From assembly GCA_029953675.1 (NCBI GenBank), contig JAMWBK010000002.1, forward strand, positions 1,426,001-1,490,000: a stretch of DNA of 64,000 bases, given 5' to 3'. The position numbers were made by a program, and so were the translations under genes. The DNA is from Rhodosorus marinus CCMP1338. Lineage: Eukaryota; Plantae; Rhodophyta. The notes below the pieces were generated by a model. That model worked only from the letters and a program-made list of their open reading frames with translations. It was not told where the DNA came from and made no database searches. Below are positions 41,072-62,552 of this stretch, piece after piece; position 1 is the stretch's first letter, and each line of letters opens with the position of its first letter.

Positions 41072-42731
41072 ATGACTCTGAGTGAGGAGGAGCTCATCGA
41101 TCTTCGGTCGAGTCTACGAGGATGTCGTCAGGAGTTGGATGAACAGTCCGCATCTGGATTACTACCAGCTCTGGGCCATCATGACTTTCGAGGTGCTTGT
41201 CTTCTCCGATCTGTATCGGGTCTTGTATGCATGAGCAATGATCCTGATTTCCTAAACTGTCCATGTTCTCAGTTCGTGTACAGGCGGTGAGAGCCCTCAG
41301 CGAAGGTCAGGGCACCGTGAAAGAGCTTGAACACGTGTTCCTAACAATTTCTAAGGAGGACTGGAATACTGAGGTCAGAATCCACGCTTTGGACGCACTG
41401 GTCACGATCCTTCAGTGAGTAATTGGCATGCGTTTAGTTGTCGGGAACAAAACAACCTCTCATGAAGGAGTCTCCTCCCAAATTCTTGTACGGTGCTTCG
41501 TCTAGGACAAAAGCCCACCCGGTTGTTCCCGATGGACTGGTGGAAATGTTGGAAACTGAAACAGGACCAGACGAAGCCCTTATCAAGCGAGCAATCATCC
41601 GCGCTATTGCTGCGTCGCGTTGCTCTGGAACTGCCGGTGTACGTCTGCTTCTCGTACTTTGTGATCAGCTGATGCGAACGGATGATCCGGATCTACAGGC
41701 AGATATTTTCCATGCCTCAACGTGTTTGAACATTGAAGAGCTGTCATGGCCTTCAATGTATGAGTGTTTGTCTAAGAGAATTCGAGCACCGATCAGATCG
41801 GGACCGAAGAAGAAGAAGCTAAGTAAGTCTGCGGTAGAGACGTCCAGGCCCTGGATATTCCGGGGTACTTTTGTCCACGGTGCTGAAAACCAGCGGTGTC
41901 AAGTACGCAGCGCTTGTGCCAAGGCCCTTGGCGAGATTTACAGTGGCTACTTGCGTACGCGAAAGGACAATCTGGACACACTCGAGTGGCGAAAAGTCTG
42001 TGACAGAGAAGTGTCAGTGATTCTATCTGACCTCTCACAAGATGATGAACCAGAGGTGAGTTTTTAGGGTGTACAATTGCTGCCATTCACCGGCAAGGTT
42101 TCTACCAGCTCGATGACGGAAGCTTTTTACACACTCCAGGTCGTTAGTGCTTGTCTGATCGCAACGAATGAGCTCGTGAAGTTCTGGCAGGGTTCACCGC
42201 TATCCTTGACGCGGGTGGAACTTCATACCGTTATTCGCCATATCCGGTTAGTTCTGCTCATCATCACCGCTGGATGAGTCGCACTTGTTTTCTCACTACA
42301 GGTGAAAGCGTTTTCTGTGCAGTGCCTTTGGGGGAGATCTCCCGGACCTCAGCCATCTAATCGCCAGGTGTGTGGATGCTGTCGGTGCTCCTGAACTGCT
42401 CTCGGAAGACGAACCTGAAGAGACGAGGACGCAAAAACCTGCCCGTACTGGACAAAGCCTGCCCAGCCTTCGCCTTCGATCGAAAGAGGGCGGTGCGCTA
42501 GTCACAGGATTCTTTCATACCATTCAAGTCCAAGACCTTCAGTGGTTGGGTATCGAGATTGCAGAAGCCTCGATGTTTGAAGTGGGCCCTCTTGATCGGA
42601 TTGCTGGCAAAGATCTCAACTCATTAAGAGTCGAGAAGACCATCTTAGACCCGAGAATCTCCAGCAGATCAAAAGCAAGGGTTGTAATTTTGCCGACAAC
42701 GCCTCTCACTCAATGGCTTCCTGAGGATTGA
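41072..42731 (+). CDS. INTS4: HEAT-repeat protein, Integrator subunit 4 / SIEL-like; multi-exon, 3-prime structure uncertain
   Basis: RGTFVHGAENQRCQVRSACAKALGEI and ILSDLSQDDEPEV|VSACLIATNEL parallel INTS4 GAFVHGLEDE..EVR.AA..AL and FLVDMFNDE..EVRL. Confidence 0.6.
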
Positions 42732-42954: not shown

Positions 42955-45030
42955 TTAGTGCAAATTGCTGTCGAAACTAACAAATCCAATTAGTTTAAAG
43001 AGGTGGTAGAAGCTTTTCTTTTCAAGCTCATTGCACCAGTGCCATGCGCTTGTCAACCGCCCATCGATACAGCTGCCCGCGTCGAAGAAGTTATCTGCGC
43101 CGCTTCCATCGAATGCGTGTCTATAAAAATCGCGCAAAACCTCCTTCTTGGCGTCCTCCACCGAGCCAAACGCATCCTCAACATACTTGAGGATGGCTTG
43201 ATCTTCGATCTTATCCATTTGTCTTAAAGCAGTGGTCAACGGCAGCAGAATTCGTGGAATATGAGCATACTTGTCTATGAACATTAACGCGTTAGGTACG
43301 TTATGATCTCCTAAATGAACAACGTCCGATCCAACCCAATTCGGTACCTACACAGAGCGCGACAGTGAGAACAGTCAATTAGAGACACGTGCAGAGCAGC
43401 TTGACACTTTCAAGAATCTGGACGGTGGGGCTGAGGCAAAAGCTCACTCGTTTCCGAACACGCTTAACGACCAGCTCCATTTCCCGCTTCAGACGAGGAG
43501 CACGCTGTAGGCGATGGATTCCCTGACCGGTGTTCCGAAGAACGTACGGTTCATTCGGGTTGAGAAGATCTCTCTCGGCGATGATCATCAACTTGCACAA
43601 GTCGTGGAGTACCTCCCTCCATAGCCATAATGTCTGAAGCACATACTCATATTGGCGTCTGTGGTCGTGAGTAAGTCTCGCACCTCCACGTCCGCTCATT
43701 ATCGCAAGTGAGTCAGACACCCGAAGTGGTTCCTCATCGGAGAAGTATTTTGTCAAATATGCTATCATTTCGTCGCAGGGATCTCTCGAAGCGCGCAGAA
43801 ACGCGTTATTGTCACCAATTGAATACAACGCTATACGAATCTCGTCCTCAGTAGCTTCCGAGTCTCGTCCATACTTTCTCGCTAAGCGCTCAATCCCGCG
43901 TTCCTTCTCTCGGATCTCCGCATTGATCTCAGGGCGGGACTTTCGCCCTGGGATGATCTCCTTCGTCGCAGTCGCTGCCAGTGGGTCATGCAGGATGGCT
44001 AAGGTGTTCCTTTGTTTCAAGAAGTGGTGCACCGTTACAAGCTCAGATACGCACGAAAAGTTCAACTGTTCTTGGACTTCTGGAAGCATTGTATCCTATT
44101 GAAAAGAACGGTCTGGTCAGTCTTTTTGGATCGCTCTTGCAACATCGGTCGTGCACTTTCGGGGCTTGTTTAAGTACCTGAAGCATATGCACCAGCTTTG
44201 CATAATTGCCACGAAGCAGTTCTGGGTTTCCGAGGTGGTATCTTCTGCTGATTTCGAAGCCAGCAGCAATCAGTTCCTTCTGGGCTGCAAAGTCCCTCGA
44301 GTTGACCAGATCGCGTCCAGTATTGAAGCTAACGCCCGCAATAACCCCAGACATGAGCGCGTACGAGTTCTTCATGACCGTGTGGACGCGTTTATTGCTG
44401 ATCTGGTCAACCCTATCAGTGTATTCGCTCACTTTGAGACAGTTGTCCACCAGCCGTTGTACCTTCCGTTCACGAGGACTCAGCCGCAGGGGTATATACT
44501 TGCTTCTCTCCTCGAAGCTAGATAATCCAGTGCCGAGCAAAGTCAGTTGGAGTAAGCTGAGGGTTTGATTCTGGTCTAGGAAAACTTAGATTCGTGTTGA
44601 TGTCTTACTCAGCATCGAACATGCTTCCCTCATAATCCCCGTGATCGAACATCTCAGCGTCAACGTCTGCATCAGCGACTGGGATCTCTGGTACATGTTT
44701 GGAGGCATCCTCGCCCCTCAGTTCTCTCAAAATGACAAGAATCGCTTCAAGGAGCTTTTCACGATCATCTTCCGCATCCCACTTCAAGATTTCCAACCAA
44801 GATATTCAGATTGTCGAAAGAAGAGGCGAAAGGATGCTTAGCATGAGAGGTCAACCTTAAGAAAACAAGCACCCAACACGGACTGAACTACTGACTCAAA
44901 CACGACAGAACCTGCAGGTACATGAGCTCAGAACGCTTACATCCTTCTCTAAGACCTTATAGAAACGATCATTCCGCTCCTCTCCATTCTCTTCGCCTGC
45001 CGAATTCTTCTGAGGATCATCACCATCCAT
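42955..45030 (-). CDS. UPF0652 / DUF2009 family protein; multi-exon
   Basis: YIPLRLSPRER..LKVSEYTDRVD, NPELLRGNYAKLVHMLQ, YSIGDNNAFL, GARLTHDH..QYEYVLQTLWLWRE, FDGSGADNFFDAGSCIDGRLTSAWHWC..LEKK. ATG at 45030. Confidence 0.9.
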
Positions 45031-46282: not shown

Positions 46283-47823
46283 ATGGAATCAAGACGAGAC
46301 CAGATTGTGAAGGCATTGAGAGGCGATGGTGTGGAAGCTTGCAAGAGGTTTCTGAGCAGTTCCAGTGATGCTGGTGACGGTCCCTCTCTCTTGATCGTTG
46401 GCGATGATGCACGTGAGGTTGTGCGAATCTCGACCAAGGCCGTCGTCCTCGTCCTTCGCTTTTCATGTTTGCGCAGCGGCTTGGGAGAGGAGTTTGCGGA
46501 AGTTTGGGATGAACGGAAGGAGACAGTAATTGTTGAGGACCTGGATCAACTGCAGGAAGTATCGTCGAAGAACTTGTTGACCGCTTTGATTGGGAATAAG
46601 CTTGATGAAGCTCGTCTGAGACCTGAGCTGCCACCAAAAATCGTCGGCGTAGCGTCCGAGTTGTCAAAGGTTCCGCCTCCACTTCTTCGGAGCGGAAGGT
46701 TTGACTATATCGTCGACCTCACTGCACCCCCCGACCTGAACTCGCGTAGGAAGGCTTTCCAAGTACTGACAACGAGCATTTGCGCGGAAGAACTTGCCAC
46801 ACTTACTCCGGGGTATTCATCCAAGGACTTCTTCCGCCTGATTCATGAGCTCGGGGTAGAAAGACTTAACGAGAACCGACTGTCTTTGCAAGCCATCCCA
46901 CCTCCTCGACAACTGCTTGTTTCTGAAAGCAGGAAAGTGTACGGATGGGATGTTATCGCCGGGTATGATGAGGAGAAGCAGGCGGTTCGCCGAGCTCTGG
47001 AGTGGCCCTTCGTCCACTCTGACACGCTCTCGTCACTTGGCGTTAAGCCTGTGGGTGGGATTCTACTGCATGGACCATCTGGCTGTGGGAAATCACTGAT
47101 GGCGAACGCTGCCGGAGCAGAGCTTCTCCTGGCCAACTTCATCCACGTCAAGCCTTCCAGCCTTCTCTCAAAGTATTTGGGGGATACCGAAGCAAGAATT
47201 CGATCCCTGTTCGCGCGAGCGAGAGCCATGCTTCCTTGCGTCATCTTCATAGACGAAATCGACTCGCTTTGCCGCAAACGTGAGTAGTAAGGTCCAGAAA
47301 CGTAGCAGGACCGGCGTAACGGCGAAGAGGTCAAAGCTTAGGGAATCGCTTGCTTCTCTTGTTCCCAGGCGATTCCGATGAAGAGTTCAACCTAGACCGA
47401 CGTATCATCGGATCTCTCTTGACAGAGTTGGATGGCATCGCTGGATCTAGAAGAGCGTTTATTCTGGCCTGCACGAATCGATTCGACCTAATTGACCCTG
47501 CTCTTCTGCGTCCAGGGCGAATCGATCAGCTGCTTGAGATTCCAATGCCAGGCTTCAAAAACAGGAAAGCAGTTCTGAAGCACCACGCGTCCCGATTGGG
47601 CTTCGATGATGACCTTCTCCACAATATCTCGCAGGCGACGGCGGGGGCATCATGCGCCACACTGCAATCCATAATGAGGCAGACTGCCATGAACAGCCTG
47701 AGAGATTCATCGGCTGGGGTTGCGCAGAAGGTCACCTTGGATCACCTGAACAAGTCGTTGACTTCTCACAATTTCTTTTCCTTTAATCGGAACTTGTTTC
47801 CTGGCGCCGGGCTTCGGGAATGA
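46283..47823 (+). CDS. CDC48-clade AAA+ ATPase (AFG2/SPATA5-like) with degenerate D1 and intact D2; 2 exons
   Basis: D2 has WDVIAG..ALEWP, GILLHGPSGCGKS, SKYLGDTE, IFIDEID, LLTELDG and TNRFDLIDPALLRPGRID. D1 keeps LLRSGRFD but lacks a Walker A motif. Confidence 0.85.
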
Positions 47824-48076: not shown

Positions 48077-50038
48077 TCAAGTCATGCCTGAACAGACAAC
48101 TCCGTTGACTGCCCCGTCACTTTGAAGAAGGAAGGTTTGCTGTCCAGGACAGTAAGAAACCATCTGTGGGTTGGAGAATTTCAGCGGAGCGTACACAATG
48201 AACGAGAAAATGGAGTACCCGACAAAACCCGTAAACAAGAGAGTTATTCCCCATCCAATAAATATGTACACAAACTGCCTCCAGTTCACTGTATTCCCTC
48301 GGAATTCCGCCAAACCAACCCCCATCGTGGCCCCAACTTGGCAGTGCGTGGTCGAGACTGGTAGCCCAAGGGCTGAGGCGGTCAGAACTGTCAGGGAAGC
48401 TCCAATTTCAATTGCAAAGCCGCGGGAAGGTGTGAGCTTGGTCAGCTTTTCTCCAATAGCAATGATAACCCGGTAACCCCACATGAACAAGCCAACCACA
48501 ATACCCGCAGCGGCGATAATTAAAATCCACCATTGCACAGTCTGGTCCGTCTCCACATAGCTATAATAATTTCCTGGGTTACACTCTGAATAGCATGTTG
48601 CCTCCTCACCCGTTGCAACTCCGCTCGAGTTGTACACAGAGAACACCGCCGGGTCGTTGCTCTGGTTCGGCTGCAAGTAGGCGAACCTTGCTGTTTCCAG
48701 GCACTGATAGAAACTAGTCCCTTCGCCGAAGCTAGTACCGTTTGTGCCGCAAAACGTATTAGCGTTCGGCACCAAGTCATTTCTCGCATACGACTCCCCG
48801 TCGTAGTCCCCTCCCTGAAACGAGCCGTCGGCATCGAATTGGTCCACCCGTCTCTCACTAAGCGCGCCGTTATTCCCGTAAAGGGATATGATAGACGCGA
48901 ACGGCGCGGCTGCGTTTGCGACATCATTTGCCCCATGCGCAAACGAATCAAAGGACGCTGTGAACACTTGCACCCAGGAAAACAGTTTCTCTGTTTTCTC
49001 GTCAAAGACCTCGACGTTGTCATGGAGAGCCTTGATCTCATCTGACAGTTCCTCCTCTACTAAGACGTTCACACCAACCTTGCGAAGGACACTCATCACT
49101 TTCGACTGGTGCTGGAAGTCCGTCGACTGGTGGATGTCCATGAGCATTTGATTTTCCCAATGGATGAGACTCTTGCGCAGAAGAGGATTCAAAATGAACC
49201 AGGTCACTGCTGCTGCTGCAAACCCTACACCAATAGCAATACCGACCACCATACCAGCGTCGAGCTTTCCATTCACATTCTCTTCAAACGGTCCCTTAAA
49301 CATAATAAAAAATACAACCAGCGCGGAAGCAATACCGTAGAACAGCGGTCTGAAGAGAAACCCACTTCGAACAGGATTCTTCCTCCGAAAAACCGTGAAC
49401 CTAACGAAAAGGAAAAATGCCAGGCCAACGATTCCCGATAGAACCGGTGAGACAATCCACGCTACTATAATTCCAACCACTCCAGACATCTTCTCCAATC
49501 CTTCACCAGTACCAACCCAAATAACAGCGCTCGGTCCCCCAAAACTAAGCCCTACCCCGATCAACGCTCCCACGATGCTATGCGTGGTTGAAACAGGCAG
49601 AGACTTTGACGTAGCAAGTATTAGCCACAACGTCGCGGCGATAAGCGCAACAAAGAAGGAGACCATGAGCACCTCGGGGCCGTTCAATACACCCTCTGGA
49701 AAGTTAGGATCGTAAAGCGGAATTCGTAGAATCTTGCTCCTTACTGTTAATGTCACCCTCGCCCCTAAAAGCAAGGCCCCTGCAGATTCCATCACAGCTG
49801 CAATAATACAAGCCCAGAACAAACTGATTGCTCCTGAACCAACCGACGTAGCAAAAGCATTGGCTACGTCGTTCGCACCAATCCCCCAAGCCATTACGAA
49901 CGACACTAAACCAGCAAGCACTACAATCCAGACATAGGAGTCGACCGTCGGAATGCTCACTGGACCCTCCAAGAACAGATCCGTTACCGACGGCGGCCAT
50001 GATATCTCCCCAGGAGGAGAAGTCACATACTGACTCAT
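48077..50038 (-). CDS. PiT/SLC20 (PHO4-type) sodium-phosphate symporter
   Basis: Intronless 653-aa ORF with both PiT signatures (GIGANDVANAFATSVGSG and AHGANDVAN), LPVSTTHSIVG, TPSRGF and PVSTTHCQVG. Confidence 0.96.
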   Translation of the reverse strand: MSQYVTSPPGEISWPPSVTDLFLEGPVSIPTVDSYVWIVVLAGLVSFVMAWGIGANDVANAFATSVGSGAISLFWACIIAAVMESAGALLLGARVTLTVRSKILRIPLYDPNFPEGVLNGPEVLMVSFFVALIAATLWLILATSKSLPVSTTHSIVGALIGVGLSFGGPSAVIWVGTGEGLEKMSGVVGIIVAWIVSPVLSGIVGLAFFLFVRFTVFRRKNPVRSGFLFRPLFYGIASALVVFFIMFKGPFEENVNGKLDAGMVVGIAIGVGFAAAAVTWFILNPLLRKSLIHWENQMLMDIHQSTDFQHQSKVMSVLRKVGVNVLVEEELSDEIKALHDNVEVFDEKTEKLFSWVQVFTASFDSFAHGANDVANAAAPFASIISLYGNNGALSERRVDQFDADGSFQGGDYDGESYARNDLVPNANTFCGTNGTSFGEGTSFYQCLETARFAYLQPNQSNDPAVFSVYNSSGVATGEEATCYSECNPGNYYSYVETDQTVQWWILIIAAAGIVVGLFMWGYRVIIAIGEKLTKLTPSRGFAIEIGASLTVLTASALGLPVSTTHCQVGATMGVGLAEFRGNTVNWRQFVYIFIGWGITLLFTGFVGYSIFSFIVYAPLKFSNPQMVSYCPGQQTFLLQSDGAVNGVVCSGMT

Positions 50039-53000
50039 CCCTCCTCAACCTCCCCAAACACTCCGTTAACCACCCACCCCACCTGTAACCCCAGCACCAA
50101 CGTCCTAGATCAAACAGTGAAGAGGCCTTGCCATGCTCCAGTTCATGTAGTGATACGCGAGCAAAACCGCCCCAGACCTCCACGCCCTCGGACCGGCCCC
50201 ATCACGAACCCCACCAATCCCAAAAGCTCAGCCCAGCTCTCACAACAACGCCAAGCTCATTCCTCACCCTCCCACCCAACAAAACCACAATGAAACTAGT
50301 TCCTCTCCGCCCTTTCCCTTCCACGACAACTGACTTGATTCCCCTCAACCACAACGTATAGCTAGAAGCAATCGCTACGAACAAGCGTCCAAATTTATTC
50401 CAGTCAAAGCAACAAGGTCTCCATCTCTAAGACCACATCCAACATCCCACATCCCACGTCTGCACCTTCCAGATTGTGTCCCAATACTTATCCAGAATCT
50501 GCTAAGGGCGCGCGATTATGAGAGTTAATAAAATGGACGAGAGGGAAAGCTACTGCTTTTCAGCTCTTACAAAATAAGCTGAGCTCTTTGCAAGAATCTC
50601 AACTCCCCTCGAACGTGAACAGGATTTCTGTCTACAGGAATTGATATTCTTACCAGCTTCGTCTGACCCCTCAAAGTCCCTGAAGACGAAGAGCTTGAAG
50701 AGGTGCGCACTCAACGCAACAAACAGGATGAAAAGCCGAAGAGAACACCAGAGATCTTTCCCCACTGAAAGGAAACCCCTATGAAAAAACCGATGTCATT
50801 TTCCATACCCCTTCGAGTTTTCATTCGCGTCTGTGGCCCCGGTCTGCTAAATAAATGAAATATCTTTAATTAGTTTATTGAAAATGTTTAGGACGTTGAT
50901 TGCTATTAGGGGTAATTAGACCCGTACTTTGGAGTTGTGCGTTTTTTTCTCACTAGGGGTACTAGTATATTGCACTTTCCACGCGGTTTTCGCATTTTAG
51001 CAAAGAACGGAAGGTATGGGGGGGGGAAGGATTCATTATATTCTCAACGGTCTCGCAATTTTATATTCTCTTTTTAATTTTCGGCGATAATGCAGCCACT
51101 CTTTCAGGGGTTGAATTCAATTTGTCACCAGGAGGACCTCCTGAAGATTGAATATTGAATATTCGGTTTGCCCATGGCATCGATTCTGTCTATAACTAGC
51201 CTTAATAAGTCCTTTCTCATGATTAAGAACCACGGTATCAAGTTATGGTAAAAATAACCTTGACTTGTCTATATATACGATATACTATTCTAAAAATACA
51301 TAATTAGATTACCACAGGAACGCGGGGTAGGTACCACTCGAATCGCGGCTGACATTTCTTCGATTCAAGTTTAGGAAAACATTTCGACAATTGATTTTCT
51401 GGCGTCGAAAATGTGGTTCTTTGGGGGGGGGGGAAGGTTCTCCATGCATTTTGTAGGTGGGACCTTGGGCAGTACCGGCGCGGTCGGGCAGCAACTGTAC
51501 TAAGAAATTGTTGCTGCCATTTTGCACAAGCTGGAAGTGGTTCGGTATGTAGACTATTTGTAGAAAAGTTCCATGCATCTTGAGAGGATTTTTGTGGGCC
51601 AAATCGGTTCCTCTAAGGTAACTGCTCGTCCCCTGCTCAAATAGTTGGAGTGTTTGTCTTTGTCCTTGATTTGCAAAGCTGTCGTTAGACATGTCTCGAG
51701 GTAATGAGTTCTGCATGACTGTCCTTCATGATTAGCAATGATTGAGGCTGATTTCGATCTGGCCCAGGAAGAGCCTGGTCTTTGCGGCCGTCAGACGGTG
51801 ATTTGCTCATGGATCACGAATTAACTGGAACGCGGACCTGATGGGCACCATTATAACCTCTCTCACCAGAATTATTCACCTGGTTTTCCTTCTCCCCTCA
51901 TTGCCGGACCCAAAATGGGCAGGCCGTTGGTACTAAACTGACAAGCAAAGCGCTCTTCGAAGTGAGGGTTTTCCTGGGTCTGAAGACCCCGGAGCTGTGC
52001 ATATGATTCAGTACTCAAGTATTTTTTAAATATCTGAGATCTTCGGACTAGGGAAAGCTTTGGAAAACTGGTGAAGTCGACACGGTCGGACTTTGCAAGC
52101 CGAAGGGACCATGTTGGCCCTTAAAATTTTTGGGCGATATAAACCTGAGCACCTCTGTTACAGTCAACAAGAAAGGAGAAGCTTACTGGACCCGGCGAGA
52201 CAGTCTGAACCGGTCGTGGCAGTGAAGGATTCTAAGAATAAGATCGGATGCGAGACAAAGGATACTTACGTTGGTTGCAGTGACAATAAGGTAGTCGATA
52301 CAAAGCATGGTCTGTGAAGGAATGGCTAGAATCTATGAGAGGGCATCAATGATGCGGCGCACTAGTTGTGTGTGTTAGAGGCTAGGGTATGACATGTGGA
52401 CGGAATTGACTTTATGTCGGACAGCTGCCGCAGGTCGTAGCTGACCCGTTCTCGGCAGCGCTCTGTATCTGTGCACGGTCTTGGACAAGCCAGAATCCTG
52501 TTGAGACGCTTCCCTCTCCGCGGGCCGATCACTTATCAGCTTGCAGCGTCCTAGGCGCATACGGAACGTCTATATTCAGCATGTGCGCGTACAACAACTA
52601 CCTCAGACGCAACTATGCCGTCAGTCCTTATACCAACTGACGCACCTTCTAAACAGTGCAATAACGATTTAACAGATCTTGACTGGTCGCCGAAGTCCTT
52701 GAGATGCTTCGGTATACGAACCTGCTTGATTTCTTGTCCAACCGAGTCCCAGACCCACCCGCCGATCCCAAAACGAAACTCCTAGCTTGTGAACAGGATC
52801 CTCCTGGTGGGAGATTCGTCCAAGTGCTTATGTTCCCGAAGAGCTGCCTAAGTTAATCACAATTACGCGCTTTTCTACTAGTGGCTTTGTTTGGATGTGG
52901 TTTCCCATTACAATCCCTCCCTCACTACGTCCCATGAGAAAGATCCATCCACCTCTCTTTTATCAGCGGGCAGTTGGTGAAGAAGATGGACGAGCTTCGT

Positions 53001-53172
53001 TTCGTGGGGGAAACCGATGGTTGTATTGAACGATTTGTATCTTATTTCGGCTTTATAGCCTTTGATCAGCATTTGCCTCAAGGTTTTTAATGTAGCAAAG
53101 CCGCTTGGAACTACAGAATCTGTTTTGGTGGTGATCGGATCTCTTGTACATGAGTTCTAAGGTATCGATGCT

Positions 53173-55235
53173 ATGGCGTTCGTTGGCGATGTGGAGGGTG
53201 TTTTGAACAAGAACATTGAAGAGAGTGAGGATCATAGTTTAATTTCTGGGATTCGTTTGTTCCAGGAGGAGCATGGAATGGGTTCGGAAAGGGTTTCTCC
53301 AGCAATAGCGATGCTGGCGGATATGGGAGTTCGGAGGGAGGACGTATTTAAGATTCTGGTCGGTTTGTTGCGAGAGGCTTTGGTCTCTGAAGCATCGACC
53401 GCGCAACTGGATAGCATAAATAATCTTTTCGGAGATGTTTTTGATAGTCTACTGGAGAAGCCGGAGTTCAGCGCCATCCCAATCGCCGTACTTGAACGCC
53501 AGACAGTAAGCTTTCAGACACAGCCCGAAGAAACTCAGGGGCTACCCTCCTGTTCTCTGGCTCCTTACCGCGTCAGTGTTTGCTTCGAAATAGGTAATAT
53601 CCGAAAAGCAGGTGAAGATTCTGGCGAAGAGTGCTCCGAATGGGAAACCATACACAGACCTATCCTTTTCGCTTAAGCAAAGAATCTGGGCTTCTGAACC
53701 GGACGTCTATAGACGGGTACGAATGAGATGAAACAGAGCAGGCGGAGCACCAGCTTATATTATAGTGTGACCATTCTGACATCGCTCCATTCCGCATTGC
53801 TTCAGGAATTGCTGCCAGTACTCGCTCGCCTGTCCCAAGACCAGTATCTGTCAGGCAAGGTCGTTCAGTATACGCTCATGGATGCTACGCCCGAGCTGGA
53901 TAAGAGTCGGCGTGAAGAAAACGCCGATCTGAGAACCATCCACAACAGAATTGGTTCAAACGAGAAGCTCTTAATTTCCACGCTCAGAACTATTCGACAT
54001 CGGTTCATGGAGACGGGAAGCACGGCATTCTGCAGTGTCATGCTCGACGTCATTTTCATGTCCCAGGAGGTAGGCAATCAACCCGCTTCAGCCTCAACGT
54101 GCATCTTGGAAGCATGAACTGCCAAGGTGGCCTAATTCCCTTCACAACTGAGACTTCCTTTTCCCCCAGAGTGGGAACTTCGAAAAGCTGAATGCAGATT
54201 CATCAACAAGGTTTGCAAAAGCTTTGTCTGATCTTAAGCAGGCGTCACCGATAGAGGCCAGTGTCAAAGACCTCAAATCCCAGGCGGAGAAATCCGTTTC
54301 CGAGGGCAGCGATACAATAGCAATCCTGTTAGGGTCCGTAACAGCGGTCACAGAGTTGTCTACTCTCCTGCTCATCCACCTGGATTCCTTGGCTAGGAGC
54401 GAAGGTGCGCTTGAACCCCAGTTTCGAACCGAACTGTACTTCTTTTAACACAGTAGCTGATTGCTCGATACCGTCTGTGGATGTGTTGCAACTCTATCCT
54501 TTCGGAATAGGCGAAAAGTTGAGGAAGACAGTTGTACTGGACGATTATACCAGGGACCTGTGCTATCTTCTATACTTGGTAAAATCAGCCAACCAATCCC
54601 CGTGAAGCGGAGTCTGTTTCTTTGCATAGTTGCTGACCTCGATCCTGCTACTGGTTGCTTCTCGTACTTGTCAGGGACTTGGTGTGAGAAAGATGACGAT
54701 TGAAAAGTCCTTTACATTTGAGGATGACTCTGTGCTTTCTGCTCAATTGACGATGATAGCATGTCTGATGTTGGACGATATACATCGAGAACAAGCGTCA
54801 GGTGAGAACTCTCTCGTCTAGTTTTGCGTATGCTAGGTGTCGACGTTCCGTTTCTTCCATGGCTTAGCTTGGAAGCCGCTGCTATTTGCCTTTCCGTTCG
54901 ATGCAGATGACGCTGATCTCCCGGATGAGAGACTGCAAAAGTTTGCCAAAACCGCCCAATTTTTGCAAAGGCTTCTGTGTTCATACGCAATCAAACTGTT
55001 CAGGTTCGATGACGGTAGGATTTTTTCGCAATATCTGAACGTTGCTCGAAATCCTCAGCTTTCGTCCGCTCAAAAAGCTCTTGACCTTCATGTTCTGTTC
55101 GTAGTCGCCGGCGTATCGAGACTGCGGAAGCCTCTCGAGTACGTCTTCATAGGTTCTGCCAATGAGACACGGGAAAGGCATGTCTCTGAATATATGCTTG
55201 GGTTCATCAGTACGGACAGCTACTACATGGACTAG
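53173..55235 (+). CDS. NELFB: Negative elongation factor B (COBRA1) homologue; multi-exon
   Basis: Collinear similarity to animal NELF-B across the exons: GIRLFQEEHG..SPAIAMLADMGVRREDVF, LKQRIW, RREENADLRTIHNRIGSNEKL..IRHRFMETGSTAFCSVMLDV, DSSTRFAKAL, IAILLGSVTAVTEL..HLDSLARSE and MIACLMLDD. Confidence 0.8.
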
Positions 55236-57592: not shown

Positions 57593-58940
57593 ATGCGGTC
57601 GTTTTCAGTTGTTTTACTTGCCTGCGTTTTGGCGTCATGGACCTGGTACGAAGTGGGTGCGTTCGACATGGACGATGTAAATTCTAAGCTGTTTTACCCG
57701 AACAAGGATCACAAGCGATCGCAGCATAAGTATGCGATTTTGCACATGACCAATTCTGTATGGTTTTTCCAGGAGTTATCGAATCTAACACTAGAGAACA
57801 AGCGTCGATATGCCCGCAAATACAACGTGGAGATGATCGTGCATACTCCTTACGAAACAGTGGGTTTGCTGGAGAAGACAAAGGAGGTGAGATGCGATGG
57901 TACTTTACACCGGATCCAGATCTTCAACTTCGCTAATTTTCTCGTTTGATCGGCGTCCTTAAATTCTTGCCAGTGTAATGAGAGCGATGATTATCTCGTG
58001 CGAGTAGGCTCAAATTGCTATTCCCAACTATCAAAAGATTTCGAAATAGATTCTAAACGTGCTCCTACGTTCGGAAAGCTCAAAATGCTGCTTCACGCGT
58101 GTGTCGGTCGAGCCAATTATTGGTTATTGTGGGCAGACGCGGACGCCCTGATAGTAAACCATACTATTCCGCTGGGCAGAATTGTGGACGATCGGTACAA
58201 CATGATGTTCACGGAGGATTGGTTCATGCTGAACGCGGGAGTCTTTCTGATGAAATGTAGTGTCTGGACTGCTAAGTTTCTAAAGAACGTGTATATGGAC
58301 AGATCGTTTGACGAGGTGGGTTTTGAACTTCAAACTTCCTCTTGAGGAACGCCATATGACCTACCCAGCTACTTTTTTCAATGTCCAGGCCCTCGCACTT
58401 GACCAATCTGCCCTACAACATCACATTGACCGACTACCAGCGGAGGACAGAGAAAAGAACATAAAGGTTATTCCAAAACACATAATCAACGTCTACACGG
58501 AGGAGTATAAACCTGGTGACTTCATAGTGCATATGGCCGGCAAGCTTTATGAGGCAACGACCCCAGGAGCCGTGGCGATTGCAAGGCAGTTCGACCTTTT
58601 CTCCTTGCAGAATGATATTGAGAATATTCGAGCTTTCTTTTCAACTCGGTACCTTCTCAACTATTATACTGGATACTGCAAAGTGACGGAGGAGACTTGG
58701 GATAAGGCGTGCTTGCATCCAGACGATCGACGAATGATGATGAAGCAATCCCTTGGAGATTGCTCCAAGGAATCGCGGTACTGGCACACCGTATGGCGGG
58801 ATAAGGGGCGAGACACGCCTTGGACGGATAAGCACGACGTGCCAGGATGGAATGAAGAAACCAGGGACTCATTGCTACGACGGGCCATGAGAGAAGGAAC
58901 AAAGGTGAACGAGGAAACAATCCAAGAGCTCCGGAGCTGA
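57593..58940 (+). CDS. GT34-family glycosyltransferase (GMA12/MNN10/XXT-like); 3 exons
   Basis: N-terminal signal/anchor, LENKRRYARKY, FGKLKML, WLLWADADAL (DxD), LNAGVFLMK, DQSAL and YKPGDFIVHMAG. Confidence 0.88.
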
Positions 58941-59774: not shown

Positions 59775-60143
59775 CTACACGGACTGAGTCGCAAGGGTCA
59801 GAATCTTCAAGTTGTCTCGATTCTTTAAGAGCGTTTTCGAAACAAGGCCTTTGATCCTCGTCCCGATCGGGTTGCCGGTGGCGTTGACCAGCACGCACGC
59901 CGACTCACCGGGAATAAACCAAGACCCATCATACCTCGCCTTCTCATTCTTCGACCTAACAATCAAAGCCCGAACCACATCACCCTTCTGAATCTTACTC
60001 ACCCCCTTTGTGTCCCTCACCGACGCCACAATCGTATGCCCCGTCGAACCCATCGCCCGAGGCCCTCTCAAAACAGATATGCATCGAACAAACGTCACAC
60101 CAGTATTATCAATCACCTTCACGACAGTTCGTGACTGAACCAT
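59775..60143 (-). CDS. rpl14: Ribosomal protein uL14, bacterial type, most likely mitochondrial; intronless
   Basis: MVQSRTVVKVIDNTGV..CISV, IVASVR, KGDVVRALIVRSK, DG..ACVLVN..GNPIGTRIKG. ATG at 60143 with no long presequence. Confidence 0.9.
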   Translation of the reverse strand: MVQSRTVVKVIDNTGVTFVRCISVLRGPRAMGSTGHTIVASVRDTKGVSKIQKGDVVRALIVRSKNEKARYDGSWFIPGESACVLVNATGNPIGTRIKGLVSKTLLKNRDNLKILTLATQSV

Positions 60144-62036: not shown

Positions 62037-62552
62037 TTAGATTCCGTGAACCTTGATGTTCTTCTTGCTTGCAAGCTTCTCGTTCACGATGAACTTCCTA
62101 ACGTTTTCACGTTGGTCGCCTTGCAGCTGAATAACTCTTCCCAATTCCTGGTCGTCAACTACACAACCGTTGCAGCAGAATTCCTTCTTGAATGCCTTGG
62201 TAAGCTTTTCCAGTTTAATCTTCTCGTCCAGTCTACAAAAAGCAACGAACGAACGGAAAAAGTTAGAAAAGAACAACGTTCGCACAGCTCCCCCCAATTC
62301 AAAACATATAACATTCAGAAGATCTCGGCACTCAAACACTACACCAGAGTGGCCCTCCCCCCCTCCAATCCCCCCCGCACAAAGAAGGCAAAAGGCTTGG
62401 TCCACTTACCCTTGTACGGTGGTCAAAGACTTGCGTCCGTTCCGCTGCTGCAAGCGGATATGCACGAGTCCTTTAGTTAAAACGTCGTCCCCACGCTCAG
62501 CCTCCGCAAAAGGGTCATTAGCTCCGGGCAAATTTAATTCAAGATCGTTCAT
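62037..62552 (-). CDS. eIF1: Translation initiation factor eIF1 (SUI1); 2 exons
   Basis: DPFAEA..VHIRLQQRNGRKSLTTVQG|L..KAFKKEFCCNG..VIQLQGDQR..IKVHG. Intron 62409-62233. Confidence 0.97.

Follow-up and report, generated by a model that had tools for sequence, protein, structure and literature searches.

Rhodosorus marinus is a unicellular red alga. We analyzed a 64 kb stretch of the genome of strain CCMP1338 (hereafter the window), which lies on the 3,480,314 bp contig JAMWBK010000002.1 of assembly GCA_029953675.1, and focus here on a gene at 53173-55235 of its plus strand that almost certainly encodes an orthologue of NELF-B (COBRA1), a subunit of the complex through which animals pause RNA polymerase II. 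The species is placed under Rhodophyta_Proteorhodophytina by Chivu et al. (bioRxiv 2023/2024). A first-pass annotation of this DNA, made from the letters alone, had proposed an intact, intron-containing NELF-B homologue at these positions, and they prove to run exactly from start codon to stop codon. The coding span of 2,063 bases comprises eight exons and seven GT-AG introns, and the spliced reading frame contains no frameshift or internal stop, as that annotation had held. In a scripted comparison the spliced product was identical to the 462-residue NCBI protein KAJ8907655.1 (P0001), which carries the label "hypothetical protein NDN08_007764 [Rhodosorus marinus]". No one open reading frame (ORF) in the ORF list of the window spans the gene.

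Exon 1 (53173..53505) opens with the ATG at 53173 and encodes residues 1-111, which form the N-terminal helices and include the family-conserved F30 and Q31; its junction is backed by the full-length transcripts P0092 and P0094. Exon 2 (53594..53716, residues 112-152) carries SAPNGKPY..SLKQRIW with the near-invariant W143, a segment that pairs with human VPEKKLKLV..VKRQIW. The best-conserved block of the protein, RREENADL..IGSNEKL..FCSVMLDV, is encoded by exon 3 (53806..54069, residues 153-240) and contains the conserved R188, G202, L207, C228, and D233. Exon 4 (54170..54404) supplies residues 241-318 and the first base of codon 319, and the junction joining ..ARSE to GEKLRK.. is present in transcripts P0002, P0003, and P0094. 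Exons 5 (54511..54578, up to residue 341) and 6 (54675..54801, up to residue 383 and one further base) are likewise transcript-supported. Exon 7 (54907..55014) extends to residue 419 and one further base, with the junction of ..REQAS and DDADLP.. seen in P0003, P0092, and P0094. Exon 8 (55105..55235) reaches residue 462 and ends with the TAG at 55233-55235; its junction, ..FRF(D/N)D to VAGVSRL.., occurs in P0003 and P0094 and is matched in the orthologue from Bangiopsis. All exons lie on the plus strand, as do the introns between them, which are 88-106 nt long: 53506-53593 (88 nt), 53717-53805 (89 nt), 54070-54169 (100 nt), 54405-54510 (106 nt), 54579-54674 (96 nt), 54802-54906 (105 nt), and 55015-55104 (90 nt). 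The last of these keeps the reading frame and has no stop codon. An ORF at 54837-55235 consequently runs through it, and transcripts and the Bangiopsis orthologue show its removal.

Fully spliced transcripts encoding 462 residues are found in two further R. marinus transcriptomes (P0092/P0093 and P0094), with 90.5% and 93.9% identity and zero indels. We conclude that the gene is intact and expressed and that its reading frame has stayed open in diverged strains. Aberrant isoforms are also recurrent. Intron 6 is retained in P0002 and P0091, which derive from two different strains, and intron 1 is retained in transcript P0005. Two such products stand in EukProt: P0091 (391 residues), with its retained intron 6, and P0096 (467 residues), in which an aberrant exon 1/2 junction destroys a conserved block.

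Two candidates were discarded while the gene model was settled. A hand-built model of 526 residues used introns of 49 and 51 nt, which are implausibly short, and overlooked intron 7 with its open frame. The model consistent with the transcripts and with NCBI took its place. The discarded, partly mis-spliced version nonetheless scored 25.7 bits against COBRA1. A frame-2 stretch of intron 6, ..VDVPFLPWLSLEAAA.., resembles human ..FLPMLMSFL.., and we regard the resemblance as chance because the stretch is intronic.

The 462-residue protein matches the Pfam COBRA1 family (PF06209) with 31.0 bits and E = 1.7e-7 over profile positions 5-290 of 348, against a curated gathering cut-off of 22 bits. The unspliced ORF pieces, taken singly against Pfam, gave no COBRA1 match, and the COBRA1 signal therefore depends on the spliced protein. 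In phmmer searches, the PDB sequences matched at E ≤ 10 were six NELF-B chains and nothing else, and a profile built from red algae only (Rhodosorus and Bangiopsis) found NELF-B as its sole PDB match, with E = 2.9e-9. HMMER aligns residues 25-325 of the algal protein with residues 28-336 of human NELF-B in one collinear stretch. The similarity greatly exceeds what chance would give. The motif pairs that the first-pass annotation quoted are aligned in this stretch (alga/human) as slKQRIW/evKRQIW, sRReenadl..IGsNeKL/tRRqgevv..vGkNvKL, and FCsvmldv/yCtlrael. Conserved residues kept in Rhodosorus include F30 and, with their frequencies in relatives outside the red algae, W143 (98%), R188 (88%), L207 (85%), and G202 (75%). 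PF06209 is already attached to the Rhodosorus protein in databases.

A word-indexed homologue search returned two proteins only, and exhaustive phmmer was needed to find the relatives. Against 1.84 billion representative proteins, it yielded 76 relatives at E ≤ 0.001. Individually, 42 of the 54 aligned relatives pass COBRA1, and their joint profile matches human NELF-B over residues 7-553 with E = 5.7e-151. Those with names include Dictyostelium, Synstelium, Mastigamoeba, choanoflagellates, Basidiobolus, Pharyngomonas, and Ancoracysta. Relatives outside the red algae all show roughly 20-29% identity, come from many supergroups, and include none that is close; as judged from these matches, the spread is pan-eukaryotic with no single close donor lineage. 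A sizeable group of relatives (P0011-P0013, P0017, P0025, P0027, P0028, P0032, P0038, P0040, P0042, P0050, and P0069) consists of COBRA1 proteins of about 480-640 residues, mostly from Logan, NCBI, and JGI assemblies. Like the red-algal proteins, members of this P0011-type group have an insertion of three residues and an NGLxxxPYxDLP motif before KRRIW. We had considered the three-residue insertion before PYxDL as a red-algal synapomorphy and dropped this idea because the P0011-type group has it too. The SAPN-type motif is confined to red-algal-type sequences.

We also compared the predicted fold with known structures. The AlphaFold2 model of the Rhodosorus protein is all-helical, with a predicted local distance difference test (pLDDT) score of 90.8 and a predicted template modeling (pTM) score of 0.86. 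The five best Foldseek matches in the PDB are all NELF-B, with E values of 6e-11 to 5e-8, template modeling (TM) scores of 0.63-0.68, and 462-495 aligned columns over the full length. Four of them are chain V of paused or arrested RNA polymerase II (Pol II) complexes, and the fifth is chain A from the crystal structure of NELF-BCE. All helical-repeat folds other than NELF-B gave E > 0.1 and TM ≤ 0.21. As modeled, Rhodosorus NELF-B is thus a HEAT-like, all-helical scaffold, and its collinearity with the animal protein extends from end to end. The first-pass annotation had named the COBRA1 profile and a structural comparison as the checks on its reading, and both come out in its favor.

The gene has orthologues in other red algae. 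Three diverged strains of R. marinus carry NELF-B, and a full-length orthologue with 44% identity occurs in Bangiopsis sp. CCMP1999. The Compsopogon caeruleus protein (EukProt EP00181_P006755) is another Proteorhodophytina COBRA1 protein, collinear over about 400 residues; it differs in its length of 688 residues and is only 23% identical to that of Rhodosorus (E = 1e-23). Just upstream of KQRIW, a SAP(N/R)xKPY motif is common to Rhodosorus, Compsopogon, and one more MMETSP sequence, within the longer pattern SAP(N/R)xKPYxDL..K(Q/R)(R/K)IW that the first two have in common. Vertical inheritance followed by fast divergence fits these sequences and the genomic setting described below.

Compared with animal NELF-B (PDB 6GML/8UHA chain V and 8JJ6 chain A), the Rhodosorus protein has the same PF06209 family, collinear order, and HEAT-like fold, with both the tryptophan of KRQIW and the RR..IG.N.KL block retained. 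It differs in being shorter (462 versus 580 residues), with shorter loops, without the disordered C-terminal tail, and with an identity of about 17-25%.

NELF-B lies mid-contig amid ordinary eukaryotic genes. Upstream are a HEAT-repeat gene at about 41438-42731 on the plus strand (ORF 41438-42067 and following), a minus-strand gene for a DUF2009 protein (PF09418, a non-canonical E2 ubiquitin-conjugating enzyme) at about 42955-45030, recognized in two exon ORFs (E = 1.8e-68 and 3.7e-29), and two genes known from public annotation, namely an AAA ATPase (46283-47823, plus strand) and a single-exon PHO4 phosphate transporter of 653 residues (48077-50038, minus strand). The 3.1 kb intergenic stretch between the transporter and NELF-B (50039-53172) holds no convincing ORF. 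Downstream, public annotation places a glycosyltransferase family 34 (GT34) gene (57593-58940, plus strand), a ribosomal protein of the Ribosomal_L14 (PF00238) family (59775-60143, minus strand), and SUI1/eIF1 (62037-62552, minus strand). The AAA ATPase, PHO4, GT34, Ribosomal_L14, and SUI1 neighbors have no evident tie to transcription elongation. Neither Rfam families nor tRNAs turned up when all 64 kb were scanned. The G+C content of the NELF-B gene is 0.48, and that of the rest of the window is 0.44-0.52.

The HEAT-repeat gene, which is expressed (MMETSP transcript P0090), is the one that the first-pass annotation had called INTS4-like. Its Pfam matches are to the generic HEAT and HEAT_2 families, with none to any INTS4-specific family, and three PDB searches at E ≤ 10 with partial HEAT proteins of 329 and 341 residues matched no INTS4 chain.

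The wider family has been surveyed before. NELF-A and NELF-C homologues were noted in Chlorella and Dictyostelium by Vos et al. (2016), and Chivu et al. report that NELF-B and NELF-C/D, the core that holds NELF together, are widely distributed and were probably present in the eukaryote common ancestor. According to the same survey, yeasts, C. elegans, and land plants have lost both (for Streptophyta its table has "found only in green algae"), and core-only species have higher pausing indices than species without NELF. Current structural work nevertheless continues to present NELF as "metazoan-specific" (PMC11881899). The first-pass annotation had offered the Rhodosorus gene as a candidate for an undescribed system, and this does not hold, as the survey already covers both core subunits. 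By our count of the names in its files, C. caeruleus is the sole rhodophyte that Chivu et al. retained in their final list for NELF-B, and Rhodosorus and Bangiopsis occur only in the initial, permissive E ≤ 10 alignments. Rhodosorus may be missing from the final list because both of its EukProt entries (P0091 and P0096) are defective isoforms. Literature searches for NELF-B together with red algae or Rhodophyta gave nothing besides this survey, and searches for nascent-RNA data on red algae likewise gave none.

The putative partner is also represented. The published table of Chivu et al. lists an R. marinus NELF-C/D protein of 571 residues (EP00189_P001308) with a TH1 (PF04858) match of 194 bits (E = 4e-57), and our own scan of its first 360 residues gave TH1 at E = 2.9e-31. 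A UniRef fragment matching NELF-C/D is assigned to R. marinus as well. A gene-model search for NELF-C/D in GCA_029953675.1 returned just a 207-residue transcript fragment. The candidate lists that Chivu et al. give for NELF-A and NELF-E contain no rhodophyte entries, and no search of the Rhodosorus genome for these subunits was made. In this respect red algae would differ from animals, where NELF-A (HDAg-like) and NELF-E (RRM) are partners. Dictyostelium discoideum offers a closer parallel: it has COBRA1 and TH1 proteins and lacks a canonical NELF-E, which is the complement we would expect for Rhodosorus, and one Dictyostelium relative (P0014) was found directly by the Rhodosorus query. Dictyostelium differs from Rhodosorus in having a NELF-A-like entry in the survey and measured pausing indices. 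The first-pass annotation had concluded that red algae kept a NELF core; this stands for NELF-B in Rhodosorus and Bangiopsis and is too broad for the red algae as a whole.

In the role we propose, Rhodosorus NELF-B would pair with NELF-C/D (TH1) to give a two-subunit "core NELF" of the kind suggested for eukaryotes other than animals. Its docking site would be the early elongation complex of Pol II and DSIF (SPT4/SPT5), and its effect a modestly longer promoter-proximal dwell time. Animal-type NELF-A (HDAg-like) and NELF-E (RRM and a helix that contacts DNA), the source of the strong regulated pause in animals, would be missing from it. In animal NELF, the NELF-A/C lobe blocks the Pol II secondary channel and the NELF-B/E lobe lies near RPB5 (PMC11881899). 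That the locus holds a native, expressed NELF-B orthologue forming the scaffold half of such a core on Pol II-DSIF is the best overall explanation of the data, and we consider it likely. By analogy with core NELF elsewhere, the scaffold half of a two-subunit core would be the most economical reading of the protein. For the narrower proposition that Rhodosorus NELF-B acts with NELF-C/D on Pol II, which draws on the same analogy, we see the chances as about even.

Several other explanations must be weighed against this one. Given an identity of 17% to human NELF-B in the structural alignment, and given that UniRef100_A0AAV8UYG9 is titled "Sister chromatid cohesion protein", one might suppose that the similarity is chance or a generic HEAT/ARM resemblance and that the protein is unrelated to NELF-B. 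This seems scarcely credible for a protein that scores above the curated Pfam threshold, whose PDB matches at E ≤ 10 are exclusively NELF-B, and that is bridged to animal NELF-B by the intermediate sequences of the joint profile. Condensin, cohesin, and importins, at E > 0.1 and TM ≤ 0.21, fall far from the 0.63-0.68 of NELF-B, and the cohesion name given to the Rhodosorus protein is thus unsupported by the condensin and cohesin HEAT folds. We regard the NELF-B identification as being as firm as computational evidence can make it. The patchy distribution of NELF-B in red algae, with one species in the published survey, could raise the suspicion of a contaminant or of a gene recently acquired by horizontal transfer from a protist or an animal. 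The mid-contig position in a 3.48 Mb scaffold, the housekeeping neighbors, and the window-like G+C content all speak against it, as do the presence of the gene in three R. marinus strains and in Bangiopsis, the SAPNxKPY motif in common with Compsopogon, and the lack of a close relative beyond the red algae; we judge such an origin highly improbable. The first-pass annotation had itself named contamination as a threat to its reading, and the long contig, the ordinary neighbors, and the transcripts of other R. marinus strains dispel it. Contamination or a pseudogene is unlikely because spliced transcripts occur in other R. marinus transcriptomes and an orthologue exists in Bangiopsis.

The two remaining explanations accept the orthology and concern what the protein does. 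Functional coupling of NELF-B to the HEAT-repeat gene 11 kb upstream, as a pausing and termination module with Integrator, was suggested by the first-pass annotation; a HEAT-repeat gene does lie at about 41.4-42.7 kb on the plus strand, and animal NELF-B does contact Integrator. In eukaryotes, gene adjacency at about 11 kb carries no functional weight. We do not consider the two genes linked because the neighbor, in Pfam and PDB searches with partial proteins, is a generic HEAT protein with no INTS4 match, because three unrelated genes (the DUF2009 E2-like gene, the AAA ATPase, and the PHO4 transporter) lie between them, and because the contact of animal NELF-B in Integrator is INTS6 (PMC11881899) rather than INTS4, which makes such a module very improbable. 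A serious alternative, if on balance an unlikely one, is that a true NELF-B orthologue has been re-purposed as a helical scaffold outside promoter-proximal pausing, for example in a cytoplasmic or signaling role, whether or not NELF-C/D takes part. In mammals, an essential function of NELF-B in the cytoplasm that does not depend on pausing has been described (PMC10591015). The subunits that in animals provide the tentacle binding Pol II as well as the contacts to RNA and DNA, NELF-A and NELF-E, have no rhodophyte entries in the published lists, and red-algal NELF-B has diverged strongly, as between Rhodosorus and Compsopogon. Re-purposing is harder to reconcile with a whole fold and family-conserved residues kept over the full length, with a partner NELF-C/D that is kept and expressed, and with the correlation of core NELF with higher pausing indices across eukaryotes. 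Besides the mammalian cytoplasmic role, several observations weigh against a native NELF-B acting in a core on Pol II. Its identity to animal NELF-B is low, as given above, and the input alignment for AlphaFold held relatives from many eukaryotic groups, so that the model is not independent of sequence homology. Evidence for NELF-C/D in R. marinus consists of transcriptome sequences, and the gene was not located in this assembly. Most red algae in the lists of Chivu et al. have NELF-C/D without NELF-B, and the subunits can therefore be uncoupled in evolution. A pausing role for Rhodosorus NELF-B is something that we infer by analogy.

It is already published that core NELF is of ancient origin, that land plants lost it, and that some algae have it, and what we add is incremental and taxonomic rather than conceptual. 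The Rhodosorus protein is, by its sequence, a newly documented member of the known NELF-B family, and its function is one that we infer. A validated NELF-B gene model in a sequenced red alga is nonetheless a useful data point against the "metazoan-specific" label, and it corrects a detail of the only broad survey by placing NELF-B in at least Rhodosorus and Bangiopsis besides Compsopogon. Tentatively, we raise the possibility that a subset of early-branching mesophilic red algae (the Rhodosorus/Bangiopsis lineage and Compsopogon) keeps a working core of NELF-B and NELF-C/D with a weak NELF-dependent pause, and that most others keep NELF-C/D alone. If this is true, red algae would provide a natural series, from species with NELF-B and NELF-C/D to species with NELF-C/D only, in which the roles of the core subunits could be studied without NELF-A and NELF-E, and would do so within a photosynthetic lineage related to the land plants, which have lost the complex entirely.

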